Origin: Basidiobolus meristosporus CBS 931.73
Taxonomy: Eukaryota > Fungi > Basidiobolomycota
DNA: 64,000 nucleotides
NCBI GenBank assembly: GCA_002104905.1
Contig: MCFE01000050.1
Coordinates: 124,001 to 188,000 of the forward strand
Direction: 5' to 3'
How positions within the stretch are numbered: position 1 is the stretch's first letter; the number at the start of each line of letters is the position of its first letter. Under the pieces are notes generated by a model. It had not been told where the DNA came from, searched no databases, and saw only the letters and a program-made list of their open reading frames with translations. A program made the translations under genes and the position numbers. Of this stretch, positions 5,298 to 27,468 are shown piece by piece.

Positions 5298-7539
5298 GAC
5301 CCAAATGCATCCAATTGATTTTTGGTTGATTGGTAATTTGACCAAGTCCCAAGTTTGATTTTCCATCAGGGCCTGATATTCCTCAGTCATTGCAGATCTC
5401 CAAAACTTCATCTGAAGACTATTTAGGGCCACTTTACAGTCTGCAGTTCATTAATATGGACTGAATAGGCATAGGCTAAGCTTGTACCCTCATTGATATA
5501 GTAGTTTGGGCTCTTTCTTCTCTGGTTGGAGTTGAGATCAAGTTTTTGTCATTATGTGATGTCATTTTTTGTGAAAATTTTGAATTTTCATCAAACAACA
5601 CATCCCTGGACCTGATTAGCTTCTTTGCTTTGTTATTATAGAGTCTGAATGCTTTGCTCTCATTGCAGTAGCCTAGAAAGAAGCATTTTACACTTTTTGG
5701 CTCAAATTTTGACTGATTTCTGGGCAGTTTCTTAGCATCTGCTGTACACCCAAATATTATTAGATGTTCTGCACTTGGTCTGTATCCATACCATGCTTCA
5801 AATGGAGTCAAATCACAAAGTGTTCTGTTGTAACTCCTATTTTAAGGTATACAGCTGTGGCAACTGACTCTGCCCAAAAATCATAGAATAACTTTTGATC
5901 ATGGATCATAGTGTTGTAAAAAGATTTGTATTCCACCTAAAAATTCACCTAACTTAGTCACTTAGATCATCACCTTCAAATCCTAGAGAATACTGACCAA
6001 ATTCCTTGCTGGGATTTACTTGGAATATACTCACCAAAATACCAGGTACCCAGAATATGAAAATTCTCAAAGTTGTCCAAACAGTCCCAAAATTTGCACA
6101 CATGTTCTTGGGACCTTCCTTAATCTATTCTATGTGTTTGTAATGCCAAGACCAGGTAAAAGTATAAATACTACTTTTACATTCAATAAATCATTAAGTG
6201 AAAACCACGTAATCTACTTGCTCTCCCAATCACTTCCAATATCACCAGGACTTCTGCTACACATAGATCTTGCCATATCAACTATTGATCTGTATGGATG
6301 TTCTGCTTCTTCATTTTGCTGTGGAGAGTATGGTACAGTAGTCTCTTGCTTTATCCCATGAGTTTTGCAGAAGTGGATGAAGAGTTTTGAGGTTTATTAT
6401 CCACCATTGTCTAACTGTATTTTCTTGATATTTCTCCAGTTTCTCGCTCCACCATGACTTTAAACTCCCTGAACTTAGACAGAGCTTCTTCCTTTCTCTC
6501 CATGAAGTAGACCCATGTGAATCTAGTATAATCATCAATAAAAGTCATTAAATACTTCACCCCACCTAAGGATAAATTTTGCATAGGTCCACACAGATCC
6601 ACGTGAATTAGATCTAATTTCTTCTTAGCTTTGATTAGCCCAGAGCTCTTGAATGCTTGTTTGGCTTGCTTCCCATATATACAGGGTTCACAGTGCTCCA
6701 AATTAGCTGGGGGATCAATTTTACTCCAGAAATTAGCTGATCTTTGATCATTTTGCACAAATAATCACAATTGATGTATCCAAATCTTCTGTTCCAAAGC
6801 ATTGGTGTTTCTTCATTTAGGTTACTTATATTGGCTTCCAGATATGATGGAATATAAGTCAACTTGTATAGATTTTCATCTGGGATATTCAAAGCAATAT
6901 TGGCACCATTTTGATCAGTGGTCCTGCATCCACAATTATCAAAGCTGAAACTGAGTCCTTCTGCTGTGGCCCTGCTTACAGATAGTAGGTTCTTGGCTAT
7001 TTCTGGTACATAGAGTACTTCTTTAAAGGTCAGTGTATGGCTTCCTGCACTGCTTCTAAGGTTTACTTGGATAGTTCCTTCTCCCACTGCATCAAGTGTT
7101 CTATTGTCACCTATGAAAACCTTCTTAATTGGAGTTTCTTGATATTGGGTAAAACTTCTTTTTAGTGTCTAAAGTGTTGTGATGCTCCAGAGTCAATATG
7201 CCATGTCTGAAAATCCTTGTTTGTGGTCATATTTAGTGCAGATATGAATAGACTATCTTTGGTTGTTGCAGCGTACCCATATTCAGGCTTCTTTTGCTGA
7301 TTATCTCTCTTTTTGAGACACCAGTCTGATGTGTGTCCTTTCCTTTTGCAGTAGTTGCAAAACAGGTTGCTGTTGCCTTTGTAGGGTATTTGGTACCTCC
7401 TTTGTTGGTTATCACTGCTTATTAAAGCATTTTCTTCTTCTTTCTTATTGGCGCTTGATTCTCTTAATTCTTGATCCAGGAACCTTCCATATATGCAATT
7501 TAAGGTCAAATCTTCAGTTCTGGACTCTAGGGCTGATAC
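5298..7539 (-). mobile_element. Ty1/copia copy A, degenerate: partial gag with CCHC, protease, GAG-pre-integrase, integrase and start of RT; interrupted by a solo LTR
   Basis: CNYCKRKGHTSDWC zinc knuckle, WHIDSGASQH protease, LDLIHVDLCGPM integrase, KCFFLGY. Near-duplicate of 9,320-11,345. Confidence 0.9.
5912..6261 (+). repeat. Solo LTR (350 bp, TG…CA) with 5-bp target-site duplication CATAG, inserted antisense into the integrase of copy A
   Basis: CATAG at 5907-5911 and 6262-6266. The uninterrupted site (GGATCATAGATCTTGCC) is visible in copy B near 10,065-10,081. Confidence 0.95.
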
Positions 7540-7891
7540 TGTTGTAAGAGTCTTGGAGATATTGGAAGTGATTTGGTGAACAAGTAGATTATGTGGTTTT
7601 CACTTAATGATTTATTGAATGTAAAAGTAGTATTTTATACTTTTACCTGGTCTTGGCATTACAAACACATAGAATAGGTTAAGGGAGGTCCCAAGAGCAT
7701 GTGTGCAAAGTTTGGGGCTGTTTGGACAACATTTTGAGAATTTTCATGTTCGGGGTACCTGGTATTTTGGTGAAAATATTCTAAGTTAATCCCAACAAGG
7801 AATTTGGTCAGTATTCTCTGGAATTTGTAGGTGATGATCTAAGTGACTAAGTTAGATGAATATTTAGGTGGAATTCCAAATTTTTACAACA
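7540..7891 (-). repeat. 3' LTR of copy B
   Basis: TGTTGTAA…TTACAACA termini. Polypurine tract TGAGTGGGAG (minus strand, 7892-7901) directly adjacent. Confidence 0.93.
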
Positions 7892-10800
7892 CTCCCACTC
7901 AGCTAAATGTTCATACTGACTAGTCCTAATTTTGACCTAAAATATTCAAACTTGTCTCTAGCTAATGGTTTGGTAAATGTGTCTGCAATCATTTCATCTG
8001 TAGGACAGTAAACTAAGATAACTAAGTTATTCTCTGTAGCTTCACATATGAAATGATGTCCAATATCTATGTGCTCAGTTCTAGCATGAAAAGTTGGATT
8101 TCTACCTAATATACATCCTGGATTATCTTGAAATAAAGTAATAGGCGTTTTTTGACATAGGCCTAAATCTGTAAACAGCTTTCTTAACCACATTGCTTCA
8201 TTTGTAGCTTCACAGGCTGCCATATACTCTGCCTCTGTGGTGGAAAGTGCTACGGTTGGTTGCTCTCTTGAATTCCATGAAATTGCTGCTTTACAGTAAA
8301 GAAAGGTGTATCCTGTGGTGGATCTTCTGTCTTTCAAATTTTGTCCCCAATCAGCATCAGAGTATCCCAGAAGATCCTGTTTTGAATCCTTATAAGTGTA
8401 TCTTAAGCAGATATCAGCAGTTTCTTTTAGGTATCTAAAAATCTGTTTAACTGCTGCAATATGATCAGATTCATAGTTCTTATTATGTTGGCTGACAACT
8501 CCCACTGAATATGAGATATCTGGACGTGTTCCAAGCATGATATACATCAGACTGCCGACCATAGATTGATAAAGAAAGTCAGGGCTTTCAGATGGCACCA
8601 AGCTCTCTTGATTTGGTTGAGTTTTGACCAAGTTAAGGTTTGTCTCCATTGGGGTAGCTGCCGGTTTACAGTCTTCCATTTGGTACTTCTTTAGTATGTC
8701 TTGAATATACTTGGATTGGCTTAGGGTGATAGTGTGGGTACTTATGTCTATGGAGAACTTAATCCCTAAGTAGTAACTGAGTTCTCCTAGATGGGACATC
8801 TTGAACTCTTTTGATAGGCTGGATTTAGTCTCTTCCAATGTTGCTAGGTTATTGGCAGCTATAATAAGATCATCCACATATAGAGCTAATAGAACTGGAT
8901 TTGCTCTATCTGGCTTATAATGTATACTATAGTCAGCATTACTCCTTTTGAAACCCAAAGATTCCAAATAAGAATCTATCTTGCAATTCCAGGCTCTTGG
9001 TGATTGTTTGAGACCATATAGTGACTTTTTAAGCTTGCAGACCAAATGTGGGTTATCTTGATCAACAAACCCATCAGGCTGGTCCATATACATGTCCTCA
9101 TCAAGTTCTCCATTCAAAAATGCAGTTCTTACATCCATTTGATGAATAAAAAACTTATATTTGGCTGCAATAGCCAATATTAATCTGATGGAATTAAACT
9201 TGGCTACCAGTGCAAAGGTCTCAGTATAGTCAAGTCCTTTTGTTTGAGAGTATCCTTTGGCCACAAGCCTTGCTTTGTATCTTTCAATTGTACCATCAGC
9301 CTTGTATTCTGTCTTGAAGACCCATCTGCATCCAATTGATTTTTGGTTGATTGGTAATTTGACTAAGTCCCAAGTTTGATTTTCCATCAGGGCCTGATAT
9401 TCCTCAGTCATTGCAGATCTCCAAAACTTTATCTGAAGGCTATTTAGGGCCTCTTTTACAGTCTGGGGCTCATCAATATGGACTGAATAGGCATAGGCTA
9501 AGTTTGTACCCTCATTGATATAGTAATTTGGGCTATTTCTTGTCTGATTGGATCTCCGGGCATTTGATACTGAAATGATCACTTATGGGATATTCCTGGG
9601 CACTGATTCTGGCTGAGCCACGGTTGTAGAGTCCTCTGGAGTGAAAAAATTTTCATTGTTTTGCTGTGATTCAATCCTGACAATTTATGGACTTGAGATC
9701 AAATTTTTGTCATCATGTGATGTCATTTTTTGTGAAAATTTTGAATTTTCATCAAACAACACATCCCTGGACTTGATCAGCTTCTTTGCTTTGGTATTGT
9801 AGAGTCTGTATGCCTTACTCTCATTGCAGTAGCCCAAAAATATGCATTTTACACTTTTTGGCTCAAATTTTGACTGATTTCCAGACAGTTTTTTGGCATA
9901 TACAGTACACTCAAATATTCTTAGATTTTCTGCTCTTGGTCTGTATCCATACCATGCTTCAAATGGAGTGGAATCACAAAGTGTTCTGTTATAACTCTTA
10001 TTTTTAAGATATAGAGCAGTGGCAACTGATTCCACCCAAAAATCATGAGATAATTTTTGATCATGGATCATAGATCTTGCCATATCAATTATGGATCTGT
10101 TAGCTCAATCTGCTACTCCATTTTGCTGTGGGGAGTATGGTACAGTAGTCTCTTGCTTTATCCCATGAATTTCGCGGAAGTGGATGAAGAGTTTTGAGGT
10201 ATATTCTCCACCATTGTAAGAGCGTATTTTCTTGATTTTTTCACCAGTTTCTCTCTCCACCATGGCTTTAAACTCCCTGAGCTTAGACAGAGCTTCTTCC
10301 TTTCTCTCCATGAAGTAGACCCATGTTTATCTTGTATAATCATCAGTTAAAGTGATTAAATACTTCATCCCGCCTAAGGATAAATTTTTCATAGGTCCAC
10401 ACAGATCTGAGTGAATTAGATCTAATTTTTCTTAGTTTTGATTAACCCAGAGCTCTTGAATGGTTGTCTGGCTTGTTTCCCATATATGCAGGCTTCACAG
10501 TGCTCCAAATTAGCTGGGGGATCAATTTTTACTTTGGAAATTAGCTGATCTTTGCTCATTTTGCACAAATAATCAAATTGATGCGTCCAAATCTTTGGTG
10601 CCAAAGCATTGGTGCGTCTTCATTTAAGTTACTTATATTGGCTTCCAGATATGATGGAATATAAGTCAACTTGTATAGATTTTCATCTCTGATACCCAAA
10701 GCAATATGGGCACCATTTTGATCAGTGATCCTGCATCCACAATTATCAAAGCTGAAATGAGTCCCTATGCTGTGACCCTGCTTACAGATAGTAGGTTCTT

Positions 10801-11869: not shown

Positions 11870-12217
11870 TGTTGTAAGAGTCTTGGAGATATTGGAAGTG
11901 ATTGGGAGGACAAGTAGAATATGTGGTTTTCACTCAATGATTTATTGAATGTAAAAGTGGTATTTATACTTTTACATTGTCTGGGCATAATGAACATGTA
12001 GAATAGGCTAAGGAAGGTCCCAAGAACATGTGTGCAAAGTTTGGGGCTGTTTGGACAACTTTGAGAATTTTCATGCTCTGGGTAACTGGTTTTTTGTGAA
12101 AATATTATAAGTAAATCTCAACAAGGAATTTGGTCAGTATTCTCTAGGATTTGAAGGTAATGATCTAAGTGACTAAGTTAGGTGAGTATTTAGGTGGAAT
12201 TACAACTTTTTACGACA
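11870..12217 (-). repeat. 5' LTR of copy B
   Basis: TGTTGTAAG…TTACGACA termini, homologous to 7540-7891, with the PBS adjacent. Confidence 0.92.
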
Positions 12218-16996: not shown

Positions 16997-19590
16997 TTAC
17001 TTGTGCCGTTTTAGCTTACTCATGATCTTGCCATGGCTGGATCCCCTTCTTCCGCCGGAGTGCGACCGCGCCTCGTCCTCCGAGGAATCCAGCGGCTCCG
17101 AGTCGTCCGAGTGGTAGTGCCCGTTCCTGTTCCCGTTCCCATTCCCGTTACCATACCCATTGCCATTTGCAAGTTGTTTTCGCGGGGATTTGTAGATGTG
17201 CTTTCCTCCCTCTTGGCGCCTTCCCCCGTCACTCTCCTGTGAGCTGTCATCAGACGTGCTATCGAACGGTTCTTGCTTTTTGGTTCTCGGGGAGCTTGAA
17301 TGCTCCCGGGCCCTCCGGGGGGACGAGGCCGAAGAGGAGTGGCTGTCGGTGCTGCTGTCACTACTTGGGGAGCCCGTATCACTGTCGCTCTGGCTGGAGG
17401 CTTGGTTCCGGGAGCCGCCAGAGTCAGGCCGATGCCGGTATCTATGAGGTTTTTGAGGGGACTTGAGCTTTAGTATAAGCCGCGTTTTGTCAAGATTCGA
17501 GCTCTTCGGCTGGCTTTCTGGCGTGGAAGAGGAGGAGGAGGAGGAAGACTCGCTCCCGGGGGACTCGGGGGTTTCTGCCTTTTTGGACTCATTCAAGACG
17601 ATTCGAAGTTTCAACGGAGGCTGCTTCGAATCGGGCTCCTCCGAGGAAGACCCGGACTCCGAGCTGATGTCTCCATATTGTCGGCTAATGACCTTCCTCC
17701 CTAGGGAAATGGCCAGGTTCAAGGGATCTCGGATGGATGAGGGGATATGGGCCTCGATCTGGGCTTTCTCAGCATCGGAAATGTTGGTCTCGAGCTTGCG
17801 CACCTGCGACTCCAAGTATTCAGCGAGCTTCTTCAGCCCATCTAGCTCCCGCAGTGAGATGACGGTCTCCTTGCCTAAAAAGGGTGAGCTGATCAGAGAC
17901 GCGTGGGATAGAGATCGGTGCTGTCCATACCTCGCAGGAGATGAAGGTAGTGCTGCCCCGCGTACCAGCAGATCTCCTCAAAATACGGGAACCGGAATTT
18001 CGCGGAGACCTTGGTGCGTTTCTCGATGCCGGACACCGCTAGCTGAAGGTCGATGTTGATTCCATGGAGGAAGTTACCGCCGATCACAATGGAATCGACT
18101 GGTGTATGCACAGCATGGATCCAACCAGTAGGGATGATCCTAAGAAGAGGGATGAGCTTGGGCTTGGGTAGGCTGGGGGAGCAATGAGGGGAGGGGTTAC
18201 ATGGTGTTTCCGGGATACAGGTGGACCTTGTAGCATTTCTTGACTTGGTCTCCGAGAAATGTCGTTGCTTGGTCGGCAGAACTGCTCCACTTTTCGTACT
18301 TGCGGAGATTGCTCTGAGTGGGCTCTATGAAGTAGAAGACTTTCTCTCCGGAGAGAATATGGTAAAAAACCTAGAGGAAGCGGGGGGTCAGTCTCTCGCG
18401 GGGCAATCAGGGAACCGGGCATCTTACGGAGGAGCCTCCGAAGTCTATATGGCTGGAGGAGGCCGGTCAGTACGCAAGTCCACCAACATCCCAAGGAAAT
18501 CACTTACAAATCGGTGAAGCTGTCTTTCACGCTCATTAAGCAGTACAGCTGCACCTTGGGGTATTCATGCTTTTTCTTCAACTCGCCGGGCCAGACCTGG
18601 TCCGTCCAATCGAGCTCTCTGTGGTATGGGTTAGAACTGGTGATGTGCTAGCAATCCGTTAGCCACAACAACTTGCCGCACGATGCGAGGCCTTTTGATC
18701 TGCAACGCCAGGTCAGTGTCGCTGATCTCGAGGCTGATCACGTTCAGTATCCGGTCTTTTTCGGGTCGATTGAAATAGTCTGCCCATTGAAGCATCGTCC
18801 AAGGGGCAATGTTGGATTGTGTGGCGACGTCTAATCATGAAAAGCAGGGGTTTAGTAGGAAGGCAGTCAGCTCACCGGAAACATTGTCGCTCACCCATCA
18901 CGCTGACCTCTCGGTAGCCACCTAGCACCCAGATGTTTAGCAGTCAGTTCACCAAACTCCCTTCAAGCCTATACGTACCGATAATGTGTGTGATGTCTGA
19001 GACGGTGATGGACGGCCTTGGCATGGTCATGTCTAAACCTTCTTTGTCTTCTATGATGATAGGCTCGTCGAGGCCATTGATTCGGACCCAGTCAAGAGTC
19101 AGCACATCCCCAGTAACCCGCTGGAAGCTCTCCGCGGCGAACTTCTTGTTCTTGAGGGATTTCACGTAGATATTCTGATTGGATGGGAGCCCGTTGTCCA
19201 GCGCGGCGTAGTTCACGTTGGAGTGTTCCCGGGAGGACTTTCGTTTTTGCTTTTTGTCTGTGGTGGGCCGGACAGGACAGAAGGGATGTTCAGTAAAGTG
19301 GGTTTGTTGGGGCGCATATGGGGCAAAAAGGTGGGAAACCTACAGGTGCTGGGGCCGTTCGGGACTACGCAGTTAGGGCAATGGTATTGGTCGAATTGTT
19401 CGCATTCCGCTTCATTGAGTTTCAAACAAGCCGCGTGATACCAGACCTCGCAGGAATCACACTGCAGCCAGGTCTCTATTCGTCCGGTCCAGGAAATACT
19501 GGTATGATTCTCTGGAGGACAAAGCGGACAGGTCTCCACGTTTAGTTGAGGGGCAGTATCAGCGTTAGTAGGCCACTGCTTCATGGGAAG
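16997..19590 (-). CDS. JHD1: PHD-finger + JmjC histone demethylase (JHD1/KDM2-like) with S-rich C-terminal tail; start approximate
   Basis: [24 protein letters not shown] finger. JmjC-region motifs [19 protein letters not shown] and [27 protein letters not shown]. Confidence 0.85.
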
Positions 19591-20126
19591 AATAGACACA
19601 AACATCAGAAAACAGTGGTGCACACGAAGCAGAAATGAGTCCTTTTGGGAATACGTACTTGAGCCATGGGTTCCGATAGAGAGGTTTTTACGATCTATCA
19701 AAGGGGTTGTGGAATTGAATAGTATGTCTCGTGAGCGCGAGTCGTGACCACGTCTTTTCACTAATATCACTGGAGTATGGAGGTCAAGAAGGTAGTTACA
19801 AATTGAAGGTTAATTACGTCACGTGATCAGGTAACCTCGTTTAATTTGTGTAGAATTTTCACACAGTTGATTTAGGCAAGGACGTGAAGATCACACTGCC
19901 ATCGCAACAGCGTCATAAGAGGCCAGTTTATTTAGGAAACGGTACCACTGCGAGAAGGGGAATGAAGGAGGTGTATTCGATGTAGTAAGGGTGGAGGAGA
20001 TCTAACTGATTGTATCAAGGTCAGCAACAAAAAGACACAGGATATCAAGAGTCTTGGGTGGTGTCGTAACAAAAGGAGCCAAATCGTCTTGGCCAAAACC
20101 TAGATGCAATTTATATACATTCACAA

Positions 20127-21050
20127 TTAACGGCCTGGATTTTCCTTGAAGCACCAGACTTCCAACTCCACGCAAATGAACCGGGGTTCACTGGACAAGA
20201 CTTCATTGTCAAATGTGGGACAGTGCGAGCTTGATCCATTCTCGAGTTCGGAGTCGAGCCACAGCCCAAACTGGCCATCACTTGATGCCGAGATGTTTTG
20301 TGAGTGTCGAGTATCTGCAAACAAGCCGTGGTTCCATGCTTACCCTCCTCCCACAGCAATAAACTCGTTCTCACAAAGAATACAATAATCATTCTTGCCC
20401 GTCCAAGGGAACACTTTGACCTTGTCCTTCTCATCTATTTTCCAAAGGAAGCTGTAGAGTGACCCAGTGAGTGTGTTATCTTATACAGACAAGCATCCGG
20501 TCGCAATTGTAGAATACACTGACCACTCTCCGGAACCATAAAAGTTAGGATGGGGCGTGAATGCATCGGACAAATAAGCTCCAAAAACCTGTCCCAAAGC
20601 CCGAGGTGAGGACAACTCTCTTAACCATAAAGCACATCAGGCGGAAAACTTACGGAGCCTGCAGCATCTTTGATAGCCAATAGTAAAGGAGACTTCCCTT
20701 TGGCGAGGCGTAACAGTGTATGCAGACTGATTCCATGCTGGCTCATGCTGTAAAGCAGTTTCCAGTTTTTCTCCAGCTGAATGCGTCGAGGGATTTTGGT
20801 TTTCAACTACGCGAAGGACTCACTGGTTACCTCGGCTTCTTGTTGGCGAAAGGGGAGTGGCTTACCTGGGCAGCATGATTTTCTGTGAGAACAACTTCAG
20901 TAGTGGGATTTCTTCCAACCAACATTCTAGCGAACCTGACGAGGGGAGAGGTGGAAATTAAACTTGTTGGCCCTCGCTTTAAATAGGCAACCACTAGAAA
21001 CACATACGTAGGACGACTCAACCTTGTTTGTTGGTTGCTACAAAAATGGA
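20127..21050 (-). CDS. OXR1: TLDc-domain oxidation resistance protein, paralogue 1; start uncertain
   Basis: LVGRNPTTEVVLT; IPRRIQLEKNWKLLYSMSQHGISLHTL; GQFGLWLDSELENGSSSHCPTFDNEVL; ELEVW. Confidence 0.85.
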
Positions 21051-21198
21051 CGGTTGACCAATTTGATCAAATTTTCCATGAAAAAGCGTCGCAATAAACC
21101 ATGTTGCAAGAATCAAATTAAATCCATCAGTGCACCAAAAATAAATCCACTCATTCACCAATCCGTTCGCCATCGCGTAACTTAGACTACTACCTCTT

Positions 21199-24100
21199 AT
21201 GTCTGCGGTGACAATAAGTGAGGCGTTCAATCAGTTTTTGGATATAGCTTCCCAAAAACTATCGGCCGCTAGCTCAAGGCGCTACGAACGTGTAAGCCTT
21301 GATCCGACTTGTTGAGGATTTCCCAGGACCCCGTTGTTTATTAACAATTGGTTAGTTTATAGACCTATTCAAAATATATCTAGAGCTACAGCACGAAAGT
21401 ACTCCCGAAGACCCTTCCTTCTGTAACTCTACGCCAGCCAGCCGCATACCAGAATTTGCTCATGATTTCTTTTTGTAAGTCTTTCTATTCTGACTGGTGT
21501 ATTTTCGTGACATGCTGAGCCACTTACGACACGTAGTACCTATCTTCCTCAGCGCAACGTCAGTATCGACATCAAATATGGCACACCAACCATTTTGCGA
21601 CGTCTTTTGTCTTGGCTCTGTGGGTATCTGAAGGTGATTCAGCCAAAAGATGTCAAGGAACTGGTAAATCTCCTCAGCCGATCAGCACAATCCAGAGGAG
21701 AGATCGATAACTGGTGGGAGCAGAATATAGCGCGACCCGGTGCAAAGAAGGCTGCAAAAACTGCAGATTCAAGCTCCCCGATGACTGCTTCAGATTCATC
21801 CATCCTTCCGAAAAACATCCCTTCAGCCCGCAGAAGTCCACCCAAGGTGAAAAATGTGAGCTCTAGTAGCCACACGGATGAAAAATATCCATTCTACGAC
21901 GACGACGACGGCTTCCAAGGAAGTGCTTTGCAAATAGGTGACGATTCATTTTATGATCAAGTAGAGCTTACAGTGGTCGAGAATTACACCCCATATTCAT
22001 GGGATAAGGAGAATGTGGTTAATGAAGAAGATGATGCTCAGCTATTCGAATTCTCTGGGATGCATGCCGAAGATAGTAACTGCCCAACGACTAATACTCC
22101 CTTGTTAAACGAGCCCGTTGTAGAATCACCACGAGACGAAAAGCAGAAGCGTCCAACCTCATCACTCCCTCATCGACATCAAAGCGATAGAAGCACACAA
22201 ATAGTTGAGGCTGAGAGTTCTCGCAACAGGCACTCCGAGATGTCGATCAAAGAACGGCCAATTGAGCACAGACACGATGCATCACGGCGGCATGAAAGCA
22301 AATCTAGAGATACTCGAAGAGACGACCCCGAGCAGTACGTGAAAAGCAGCTCAAAACTCTCAACCAAGAAGTATTTTTCCGAAAAAGATCATGGCCGTGC
22401 CAATGAGAGAAAAAGCAAATCATACCATCAATACGAGAGCAAATCCAGAGACCATCAAAGGTACGACGCCGACCAAGATCGGAGTCGTGACTCGGAATGG
22501 TCAACTGAGAAGCGAAGGGAATCGTTCCACCGACACCAAAGCAAATCCAGAGATACTCGAAGAGATAATATCAAAGATGATCGAAAGAGCAGTTACAAAC
22601 ACTCCACTAGAGAGCATTCAATCAAGAGAAATTCCCGATACACCAACGAACATAGTGAACCATACCGTCCACATGAAAGTAGATCAAAAGATGACTACCA
22701 TCAATATAATGGCTCAGCAACATCAACGCACAGTTACTCAGCCAACAAAAGCTATGGCCATGGTGATAAACACAGATATGTGTCTAAGGATTCTCGACGA
22801 GATGGCGCCAATCTATATCGACATAGTGCTTCAGAAAGGTTTCCTAAGGACCGCTCGGCTACCAAGTATAGCGATGACCTTCGTCAACATCTCAATGAGC
22901 CGTCTCATCAACAGGAAATCAGGTCCAGTGATGCCCGAAGCCGTGCTACTCAAAAGCGCCCAAATGAGAGGAGCCACAGTCCGGCCGATAAGTGGAAGAG
23001 CGAAAGTAAATCCAAATATTCTCGTAGGAGAGACACAGAACAAGGTCGAATAGAGAATCCAACAGAGCTGACCAGAGATCGCTCAGCTGATAGGGATCGT
23101 AACCGTATGAAGCGCAGAAGAAGCAACAGTAGATCTAGGGAATCTCGAAGTGATGAAGCAAAACAACACTCGAAGAAGTACAATTCGGAAAGATCGACCA
23201 GAGAACGTTCAACTGAGGGCGATCACGATACTGGCAAGCAGCAACGAAGCATGCCATCCCACCGACAAGAAAGCAAACCTAGCGAAGCTCTTGATGACAA
23301 AGAGGTCAGACATTCAACCAATCATGCGGTACCTTCATCTAAGCAGTCGTGTGAGAAGGATCCATATGTTATGGGTCAGAACCGATACGAAAGTGAATCT
23401 GGAGGTTCCCAAAGAGATGAGACTGGATTTTCCCGAAAGAAGCGTTTGAAAGTTGAACGGAGTAGCGATTTGCCACACGGACATGAAAGCAAATCCAGAT
23501 ATCTTGAACAACCTACATCGAAGAGCTCAGACCACTCGACCAGAGGACATCCTTTCCAGAAGCCGCCTAGTCAACCCGCTAATGAGCCAATACAATGGCG
23601 CGAACCCAAGTCAGCTGAATTCAAGCACTGAACGTCCACCTAGGGAAGACCAAGTCCATTTCGACCATTCGACAATCGAACCACATGACATGTGCGAGAG
23701 TAGGGATATCCATATCAACGAGCAGAGAAATGAATCATCAAACCGACACCAAAGCAAAGTTGAGGACAATGAATACGAGAGGGGGTATAGAGGGGCAACA
23801 GCTCAGGAAGGCTATCGACACACCATCAACCTTCCAGTTGATGAATATACAAAGAGACACTCTGCAGAAACCGCAGGATCTATGAAGCACCAAAAGAGAG
23901 CGAGATCTCCGAAAACAGAAAGGCGCTCCGGGGCTGAGGAGCATCCAAGAAAATCCCCAAAAATCGCTGACAGTAGTCACCATCGAAATCCAGAGCAGAA
24001 GTCACCACACACGAGAAGATCAGAGCCAGCTTTACACAAAGCAGAGAGGGAGTACCGGCATGGTCAATCTTATAGCAGACATTCCAACGCACATGCGAGA

Positions 24101-24463
24101 GATGCGTTGCAAGAACCAGTGGACAATAGTGCAAAATACCGCCATGAACAAACGACCACCAGAAACCATGCAAAAGCATACCTACGTAGACCTCATCCAG
24201 CACCATATGACCCAGAGTATTACGAAGGGACCCCGTTGGTGATAGAGAAAGCCATCTACGACGATTTAGATGATTTCTCTCCATTGTCCAAATCCAACAC
24301 CTCATCTAAACCTCGCGTTGTCCCATCTCGTAACCCTGAAACTGAGGCTGCACCGACGAAGACGAGGAGTCCAGATGTCACACCACACAAACTATCGAAG
24401 AAGCAGGATCCAGCAAAGATCTACTCCCTCGATCGTCTACTAAACCTAATGTCGGAAAAGTAG
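21199..24463 (+). CDS. Uncharacterised ~1,030-aa protein: helical N-terminal domain plus long H/E/S/K/R/D-rich repeat tail
   Basis: ATG 21199. Introns 21292-21355 and 21475-21536 splice in frame into the 21595-23631 ORF. A frame change to the 23453-24463 ORF is resolved by a 34-nt GT-AG segment (23610-23643) or reflects a frameshift. Confidence 0.75.
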
Positions 24464-24731
24464 GCGATTGCTGGGAGAGCACACACGATCCATCACCATC
24501 GACATCACCACCACTACTGCCGAACATTCTTTGATAGACTTTCACATCTACAGGATGACCACTCTTTGACAGAGCGGCCCTCCACTTTGTAATATATGAA
24601 GCAGCGACGATTGTAAGCGATTTTGGATAGAGGCTTATTTTGTAATTAAAAGATAGAAGGATTTATATTGCGGAGCAAGATGTACATTGAAGGAGCATGT
24701 GGGAAACAGTTGAATGCAGGATATCACCCCA

Positions 24732-26146
24732 CTAACACGACCAAATCTCCAACTCCATACAGCTGAAGGCGGACGAAGTGGCCAGGACCTCATTGTCGAA
24801 GGTGGAGCATCTAGCGGAGAAGCCCCTGTCCAGGTTACCATCCAACCAGAGGCCAAACGTGCCATTTCTAAGAAGGCAGAACACGGGGGTCAGTCAGAGA
24901 AGAAGCCGAAATCCCCTCCACATCGGGATGGGTCAGTGAGAATGTAGTTACCCTCCACCCACGGCGATGAATCGGTTTTCAGATAACATGTAGTATTCGT
25001 TCTCGCCGGTACGCTTGTATACCTTGACCCGGGGGTGGCCGGGGTCGGGACGAAGCTTCCACAGGAAACTGAATGCAGGTTAGTACCGAGAGCAGATCCA
25101 TCCTCGATGCCATCCCTAGATAGTTACCATTCCCCGCCACCGTAATAGGATGGACTTGGTTTGAAATGCTCGGTAACGAAGGCCCCAAACACCTGTCGGC
25201 CGGATTAGCTCAAAGCGGGGGCAATCGAAAGTTCGCAGTACCTACCGAACCGCATGCATCCCGTATCACCAGCACCGAGGGTCCCTTGTTTTGGGTGATC
25301 TTGAACAGTGTGCTAAGGGTGCATCCGTGTTGCTCTAGACTGAACAAAAGTCTCCAGCTACGATTGAGGCGTAGGCGATGCGGGATGTGGCGAGAGATCT
25401 ACAGGACTCAAGGGTTAACTCGAAATCACCCACCTAAGACCATGCTTAAGTGAAACTATCACGGACCTGTTCGGCCATCCCCACCGTCAGGAGAGGTTCT
25501 TCGTCGAACGATCGGCCGATCAGTTGGATCGGGGGTAGCTCGAGGGCTTTCTGGAGAGGCTTCAGGAGGTTGACTTTAGAGGGCTCGATTGGCAAGGATA
25601 AGGTGCGTCTATGCACGTGTCTATAATTATGGGATAATGCTATGAACGAGTTGAGCTGGTCTTCGGGATCCGAGTGATACTCCTCATCCTCCTCGGTGTG
25701 GTGGGCATGTATGGAGGTGGAGTAGGACGATATCAGTCTGGCGGGATGATTGAAGTTCACTCGGTGTACCTGGCGTGGAACCATTGTAGGAACCGAGTGG
25801 GCTCTCCACTTTCTCACAGTGTGTCTGCCAGCTTTGTCGGATAGTTTAGGGGAGCCAGGAGGCGATACTGCATTACACTAAGACACGGGAACGAGAACAA
25901 GGGATCGAGTTAGTATGGGCCAACATCTGGTCCACAACAAACACCCCTTACCTGTACAGCAACATAATCGACAGCAATCGTACCTTTATCTTGAACCTGG
26001 GGGAAGATCCAGTGGTGCCCACCGCTAGCCTTAGAGGTCAGCATAGGGGATCGATGATGCCTTTTGCTTATTGAAGGGTGTGGATGACCAGATAGCCTGT
26101 GAAGGGTAGAGGTAGTTGGCATTGTAGATCGACACCTGGATGGCAT
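24732..26146 (-). CDS. OXR1: TLDc-domain oxidation resistance protein, paralogue 2 (multi-exon)
   Basis: Spliced: PPIQLIGRSFDEEPLLTVGMAEQISRHIPHRLRLNRSWRLLFSLEQHGCTLSTL…VFGAFVTEHFKPSPSYYGGGECFLWKL…FGLWLDGNLDRGFSARCSTFDNEVL…ELEIWSC*. Confidence 0.85.
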
Positions 26147-27468
26147 GTTCGCTTTGTATATAAAGGGAGAGGGAGTTAAGTGGGAATAAAAAGAGGGAAG
26201 TTTTAGTGATTCCGGTTAGGAAATCCAGTAATTTCTATTAGAATGAAGGTAAGTGTGTTGAGGGTAGGGGTGGGCAACAAGCATCCTTGTCACGTTTTTA
26301 TAGCGACTGCGGGATCGGTGGGAAGTGGTGATCCACGGTCCACTAATAAAAGCTGTGCTACAGCCTTTGGTCCATAAATAACTCTTGTACACTGATAATA
26401 ATACATGCATGCAGTCCAAAATTTTCCATCCAGCTCAAACCCATCTTGCTTTGAACATGAACGAATCCCACCGCATGATGTATGAAACTACCATAACATC
26501 TGATTTCCACAGTGGGATTACCATGGGTGCAACAACCAGTCCACGTGTGTTGGGCTTGGTTGATGGCCTATCCTGGATGTTTGGTGTGTGCTCTGTGGCT
26601 TAGATGGATCAATCGTCATCCCCAGCATATTTCTGCCGTAACCGGACTCTAACAAACGCCGGAATAGTGAGAACGAGTAAACATAATCAACTTGATTAAC
26701 AAACGTATTGTTGATTCTGGATGTGGCTGCGAGGGGGATCTCATCATCGAATCCATTCCCAATCACTCGGCTCTCCTGCTCTGTTCCGGAACGGACATGA
26801 GCGCTGGATGTGAACATCATACCCAGAGCGTGAGTAAAGGTTTCGGAAGAACGCTCGTGACCTCAGGAGATCGAGGTTTGGTTCACTAGGTTTTACTACG
26901 TATTCCCTATCAAAGTAAATTGAACCATAATACCTCTACCTGAACCAAGGTGCAATCGCTTCACACATCACAGCTTCAGCTTCACCCACGCCAGGGGTAG
27001 GGTCAAGCCTAAGCCATCACGTCCCCCAGGAGCAAAACCCCCTTCCTTAGAATAGAGGCCAAGTACATGGTGGCGAATGCAAGAGCACAGAATAGGCCAA
27101 TTTATATATATTCACGTATATACATAGTTATACGTTTCACTAAAAGCAGATGACCAACGACCACTTCCATCCCGATACTGGGCAACATTACCATGGTTGG
27201 GAAAGACAGTCATGGCGATACCCTTAAGAAACATCAGTCTGGCCCCGAAGCTGGATCTTTCTTTTGGGATTGGACTAAATCAAGTGAAATTGAATGGCTA
27301 TCTCGCTCACCGTCCACCAATTATGGCCCGCCACTAACGGTTAAGGAGGGTGGGATGCGTTTTGAGAAAAGGCAAACCAGCGGAAAGTCCCTATAAATAG
27401 CTTGGGGAGCGCCGGGGGAATTTAAGCTCCACGCCATCCTTAACATCGCCCACTCGCCTTCCATAGAT

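Follow-up and report, generated by a model that had tools for sequence, protein, structure and literature searches.

A Basidiobolus gene encoding a predicted helical head, possibly of the recombinase core-binding type, and a charged repetitive tail

Tyrosine recombinases carry a C-terminal catalytic domain (Phage_integrase) with the active site R-K-H-R-H/W-Y. The core-binding domain binds DNA by inserting its helices B and D into the major groove. The DNA-interacting domain with which the MRG domain was compared in a 2006 paper in Structure is reportedly this recombinase core-binding domain. In its title, that paper, which is cited in PMC1747190, calls the MRG domain structurally homologous to a DNA-interacting domain. 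Genes derived from Cryptons or tyrosine recombinases, among them those for DUF3504 proteins, fungal Gcr1 and Cbf2, have non-catalytic nuclear DNA-binding or regulatory functions in fungi and animals (PMC3212892).

Here we describe a gene of Basidiobolus meristosporus CBS 931.73 that lies in a window of 64,000 nucleotides (contig MCFE01000050.1, positions 124,001 to 188,000). Its gene structure, splice positions and conservation are presented. The encoded protein has no catalytic recombinase domain and no sequence relatives beyond its orthologue in B. ranarum. We propose, with a probability of roughly 0.5, that this Basidiobolus-only gene encodes a non-catalytic nuclear adaptor, in which a helical head of the core-binding ("SAM-like") type would be joined to a disordered tail.

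Gene structure and conservation in Basidiobolus

The N-terminal head of the protein is distributed over three exons. The helices named below are predicted.

21199..21291, + strand: exon 1, ATG and first 31 head codons, helix 1 and the onset of helix 2
21292..21355, + strand: intron 1, 64 nt, phase 0, GTAAGC...TTAACAA...TTAG
21356..21474, + strand: exon 2, 39 codons plus 2 nt, remainder of helix 2, loop and helix 3
21475..21536, + strand: intron 2, 62 nt, phase 2, GTAAGT...GTAG
21537..21741, + strand: head portion of exon 3, helix 4 with RRLLSWLC, two more short helices and a WW motif at the end
21537..23631, + strand: open frame of exon 3, 698 codons up to the TGA at 23629-23631

Both introns are canonical. 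Exon-by-exon translation shows that their removal restores a single reading frame, while read-through of intron 1 or intron 2 leads to stop codons. An in-frame TAA lies 7 codons 5' of the ATG at 21199. The initial annotation had claimed two in-frame introns of 64 and 62 nt, and this claim holds: the exon translations equal its peptide exactly and B. ranarum shares both junctions. A tandem duplication of 23 nt (2 copies, 84% match) is found at 21115-21161, just 5' of the ATG, in what is likely the promoter or 5' UTR.

The only relative of the gene was found in B. ranarum. When the exon 3 part of the head (71 aa) was searched against 1.84 billion representatives with phmmer, a single match was returned (P0002, E = 1.8e-5). 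A cluster mate of this match, P0003, contains the whole head. It is the product of B. ranarum K7432_012492 (KAK9696405.1, 629 aa), annotated as a "hypothetical protein". The description of the protein as an orphan is therefore correct in that its sole relative among these representatives is the B. ranarum orthologue. The head had also been called hidden. It is indeed absent from the B. meristosporus annotation, but the B. ranarum record annotates it in full. P0002 and P0003 are two annotated isoforms of K7432_012492. The 539-aa isoform begins at a Met within helix 4 and is without most of the head, perhaps because an intron is retained or a different transcript is made.

In the B. ranarum locus (L002), the introns are 59 and 63 nt long and agree with those of B. 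meristosporus in codon position and phase. Amino acid identity to P0003 is 68% for exon 1, 62% for exon 2 and 43% for the head part of exon 3. DNA identity by codon position is 74/90/35% in exon 1, 72/88/38% in exon 2 and 59/77/39% in the exon 3 part, so that the exon differences between the species lie mainly at third codon positions. The interiors of introns 1 and 2 are 30% and 37% identical. This pattern of exon codon positions, set against the intron identity, indicates purifying selection on the spliced frame and thereby confirms the two-intron gene structure. Splicing at both junctions is thus supported by the comparison between the species.

The two genes share the head, the intron positions and three tail motifs, whose order is also conserved. 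They differ in length (629 aa in B. ranarum versus roughly 1,040 codons in the window), in the expanded H-x-S-K-S-R-D repeat region, which K7432_012492 lacks, and in their neighbouring genes. On the available records the gene is lineage-restricted, being known solely from these two species of Basidiobolus, and the family has no name. A 2025 preprint describes 19 further Basidiobolus genomes (10.1101/2025.03.31.646025).

The neighbours in the window are ordinary eukaryotic genes, namely HAUS5, a JmjC protein, two TLD-domain genes, UPRTase, HSP90 and a GH18 chitinase. The TLD-domain (Oxr1-like) paralogues flank the gene at 20100-20810 (- strand) and 24630-25350 (- strand), on the strand opposite to it, and share a similar C-terminal motif FGLWLD...TFDNE..L. 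The B. ranarum orthologue adjoins a TMEM18 gene instead. On the 3' side of that orthologue, L002 6868-7605 matches the window at 6030-6240, 7562-8076 and 11891-12080. The matched genes lie 9-15 kb 5' of the one described here, and one of them is matched at two places. Together they suggest that the microsynteny is rearranged and that a coding segment is locally repeated.

When 19000-27000 was searched for repeats, no terminal repeats were seen to frame the gene. A mobile element was considered and rejected given the ordinary neighbour genes and this lack of framing repeats. GC content is 46.6% for the gene and 46.0% for the head exons, compared with 45.0% for the window, and no paralogue was identified in the window when the exons were used as tblastn queries. 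The locus has the properties of a host gene: canonical introns conserved in position, native composition and ordinary neighbours. Judged from its sequence, the spliced three-exon gene is a genuine, single-copy, protein-coding gene.

Tail, frame break and public gene model

The features downstream of the head are as follows.

21937..21993, + strand: motif 1, GDDSFYDQV-E/D-L..-V/I-E.Y.P, acidic and hydrophobic, conserved between species
22250..23770, + strand: charged region of low complexity, containing basic clusters (e.g. 23104-23151) and degenerate units of H-E/Q-S-K-S-R-D
23494..23719, + strand: interval of the +1 frame break, register in frame 1 up to 23493 and in frame 2 from 23720
23633..24463, + strand: C-terminal part in the second frame, with motifs 2 and 3, ending at the TAG 24461-24463
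24221-24247, + strand: motif 2, YEG.PL.IE, conserved between species
24422-24460, + strand: motif 3, C-terminal, YSLD.LLN, conserved between species

In frame 1 the tail comprises 631 residues (20% K+R, 17% D+E, 21% S+T and 15% hydrophobic). The tail in the second frame has about 276 residues and a similar composition. The initial annotation gave a tail of about 900 aa. Both parts together account for such a length, but they are joined only across the frame break. The three short motifs are the only tail islands kept between the two species, and the tail is fast-evolving, highly charged and probably disordered. Motifs 1 and 2 share an L-x-V/I-V/I-E core beside acidic residues, which would resemble a SUMO-interaction motif. 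Several of the basic clusters look like nuclear localisation signals.

The public gene model differs from this structure. The ORF at 21595-23631 matches the B. meristosporus CBS 931.73 protein K493DRAFT_405076 (P0001) at 99% identity. This JGI model begins at an internal Met (21781) and is without the head. It splices out 22076-23158, a stretch of 1,083 nt that is exactly 361 open in-frame codons and contains repeat units. The 148-nt "intron" (23305-23452) by which it then changes frame has weak signals and was rejected, since it throws a repeat unit out of register. The model probably needs re-annotation. As it stands, K493DRAFT_405076 misses the only folded domain of the protein, which the structure given here supplies.

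A frame change is nevertheless present further downstream. Units of the repeat family D1 (...H-R-H-Q-S-K) are in frame 1 at 22405, 22507, 23239 and 23455 and in frame 2 at 23720. This switch of the repeat register places a true frame change between 23494 and 23719. Among the GT...AG pairs of length 3n+1 over this interval, none has convincing splice signals. A one-base error in the assembly or a recent mutation would explain the break. The second-frame part up to 24463 is, from its motifs, part of the gene, as motifs 2 and 3 are collinear with P0003 residues 414-435 and 612-622.

If the break were a real mutation, the B. meristosporus copy could be a decaying pseudogene, with only the B. ranarum gene functional. 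The ORF of the same composition that continues in the +1 frame after the stop at 23629-23631, the passage of the repeat register from frame 1 to frame 2 and the lack of a plausible intron would all be expected of such a copy. However, the frames on both sides are long and open (698 and 336 codons), the C-terminal motifs are intact and collinear with P0003, and the head shows purifying selection. A single-base assembly error accounts for the break equally well. We therefore consider a pseudogene unlikely.

Sequence searches and predicted structure of the head

The exons were searched one by one, with the annotated B. ranarum P0003 as the full-length proxy. Neither P0003 residues 1-140 nor the individual window exons gave a Pfam match (hmmscan, up to E = 10), and PF02899, PF13495, PF13102, PF14659 and PF12834 were not listed for either. 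The head was likewise without a family match in NCBIfam and PHROGs and without a match to PDB sequences (phmmer and profile). Word searches in which exon 3, the first 75 residues of exon 3 or alignment A1 served as query identified no family or relative, and the ESM Atlas returned no relative for the N-terminal part of exon 3 alone. Among 50,697 phage records, tblastn gave chance tail-fibre matches only. In 185,579 genomes of bacteria and archaea, a pattern scan identified no relative of the head. A degenerate DNA pattern for FKIYLELQH had five chance matches in metagenomes, none of them in an open frame.

Alignment A1 was compared by hhalign with E. coli XerD and with a 75-sequence XerD profile, and the probability was 0.4%. 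Neither the global score (z 0.3) nor the local score (z 1.7, equalled in 13 of 200 shuffles) exceeded those of column shuffles. This negative is weak evidence because the XerD profile is narrow, its 75 sequences being from Enterobacteriaceae only and 78-99% identical. The best local alignments fall at structurally equivalent helices (head 11-31 with XerD 9-31, and head 91-98 with XerD 79-86). No HMM, profile or BLAST method linked the head to SAM-like families.

Other parts of the protein were equally devoid of known domains. The catalytic Phage_integrase domain (PF00589) is absent in Pfam searches of P0003 and of both window ORFs, and the head is followed by charged sequence of low complexity. 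This agrees with the initial annotation, in which no catalytic recombinase residues were said to follow the head. Pfam DUF3504 and GCR1_C were matched on no part of the protein, and MRG (PF05712) was not matched on P0003.

Structure prediction is the one source that drew the head towards recombinases. For P0003 residues 1-126 as modelled in the ESM Atlas, the neighbours in eight of the ten family sets are tyrosine-recombinase N-terminal domains (TM by query 0.56-0.69, 101-124 residues aligned). The other two sets are an unnamed actinobacterial cluster and an MRG/EAF3 cluster at 0.63. Neighbours by language-model features (score 0.93-0.95) are small bacterial proteins, some of them with PF02899, PF13495 or PF12834. 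Structure neighbours and feature neighbours of the Atlas are counted as one source.

AlphaFold2 was run in two ways. With a four-row alignment, pLDDT was 49.9 and the structure-search matches were uninformative. For P0003 residues 1-108 without an MSA, pLDDT was 51.6, and integrase N-domains were on top in both Foldseek and the Atlas but tied with generic four-helix bundles. Both models place helices at 6-17, 23-45, 58-73 and 87-105. The 104-residue integrase domain 3nrw was covered end to end (TMt 0.42). The AlphaFold2 models, of low confidence, are weakly compatible with a core-binding fold and non-discriminating. The predicted pI of the B. ranarum head is 9.1, and the computed net charge of the B. 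meristosporus head is 0.

The SAM-like or core-binding resemblance noted in the initial annotation is thus borne out by the Atlas neighbours, but by none of the HMM, profile and BLAST searches. From the models, we put the chance that the head fold is core-binding-like at about one in two.

A real possibility, if not the favoured one, is that the head is a lineage-specific helical bundle unrelated to recombinase core-binding domains, in a young or fast-evolving orphan, and that the Atlas resemblance is a false lead. Every sequence and profile search being negative is what such an origin would produce. The AlphaFold2 models also match generic bundles equally well at low confidence, and few features are shared in the Atlas. 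Random resemblance, however, should yield mixed neighbours, and not integrase N-domains in most of the Atlas sets at the TM values given above. The MSA-free AlphaFold2 model, moreover, again ranks these domains first in Foldseek and in the Atlas.

The MRG/EAF3 neighbours raise the question whether the head is a divergent domain of the MRG type, which is known from Eaf3, MRG15 and Alp13. The head would then be a eukaryotic module for interactions between proteins in chromatin complexes and would not derive from a recombinase. This is very unlikely, as Pfam PF05712 is unmatched and the integrase family sets outnumber the MRG sets. The MRG domains, of about 165-185 residues, are also covered only partly (TM by target 0.25-0.31), in contrast to the end-to-end coverage of 3nrw. 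If the head is core-binding-like, recurrent MRG matches are expected because MRG resembles that fold class.

A bacterial origin was also proposed in the initial annotation, where the head was said to resemble an uncharacterised bacterial family and to be perhaps horizontally acquired. Under such a scenario the head arrived as a stand-alone SAM-like small protein and gained its introns and tail later. Most of the Atlas feature neighbours are hypothetical proteins of bacteria and are small (100-133 aa), which points in this direction. Basidiobolus is also reported to be rich in genes of bacterial origin (PMC7466969). However, the 1.84 billion representatives, the word search and the scan of 185,579 genomes contained no bacterial family or relative of the head. 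The GC content is native (46% versus 45%) and the two introns are at conserved positions. Horizontal transfer is therefore unsupported, given the lack of a bacterial relative and the native composition, and we regard it as exceedingly unlikely.

Proposed role and comparison with known systems

We favour a protein with a modular plan, consisting of a folded head, a disordered tail and three conserved short motifs, in a gene restricted to Basidiobolus. The alpha-helical head of about 105-135 residues would comprise four main helices and two short ones. Its architecture is most likely that of a tyrosine-recombinase core-binding domain with no catalytic domain attached. The docking site of the head may be DNA, chromatin or another protein, and the short motifs of the tail may recruit partners, two of them perhaps through SUMO. 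In B. meristosporus the tail is expanded by repeats of the H-x-S-K-S-R-D type. We infer that the protein is probably nuclear and that its putative role is that of a non-catalytic adaptor.

The source of the head can be addressed only tentatively. A core-binding domain could have been detached from its catalytic domain and domesticated alone as a docking head, its source being a recombinase element of the host itself and not a bacterium. We consider this conceivable though rather doubtful. If true, it would be recombinase domestication of a kind undescribed so far, as the known cases keep the catalytic-fold domain. A head that is truly core-binding-like would represent a rare reuse of the recombinase DNA-clamp domain without the enzyme part. 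If it is not, the gene is an ordinary lineage-specific orphan.

Core-binding domains (PF02899, PF13495, PF13102, PF14659; 3nrw, 2kiw, XerA 5hxy and XerD) are N-terminal and about 100 residues long, like the head. Their four main helices are similarly spaced, and they are its closest predicted-structure neighbours. Motifs of XerD are echoed at equivalent positions of the head, with F-L-D ... L-S ... Y-x-R in helices 1-2 and R-R-L ... L in helix 4. Unlike these domains, the head has no HMM or profile match, is followed by no catalytic domain and contains two spliceosomal introns. It also has two additional short helices (residues ~106-135) and is continued by a disordered tail that is 500-900 residues long.

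The MRG domain (Eaf3 / MRG15 / Alp13) is all-helical like the head, recurs among its structural neighbours and is itself eukaryotic and nuclear. It differs in its length (~165-185 residues), its C-terminal position, its pairing with a chromo barrel, the lack of a Pfam match and the partial alignment.

The Crypton-derived genes provide a precedent for recombinase-derived nuclear proteins like the one proposed here (PMC3212892). A core-binding-like head would be new because the known recombinase-derived host proteins keep the catalytic fold (PMC3212892). In Crypton-derived genes the catalytic-domain fold (DUF3504), GCR1_C or both are still present, whereas the gene in the window would keep the front domain only.
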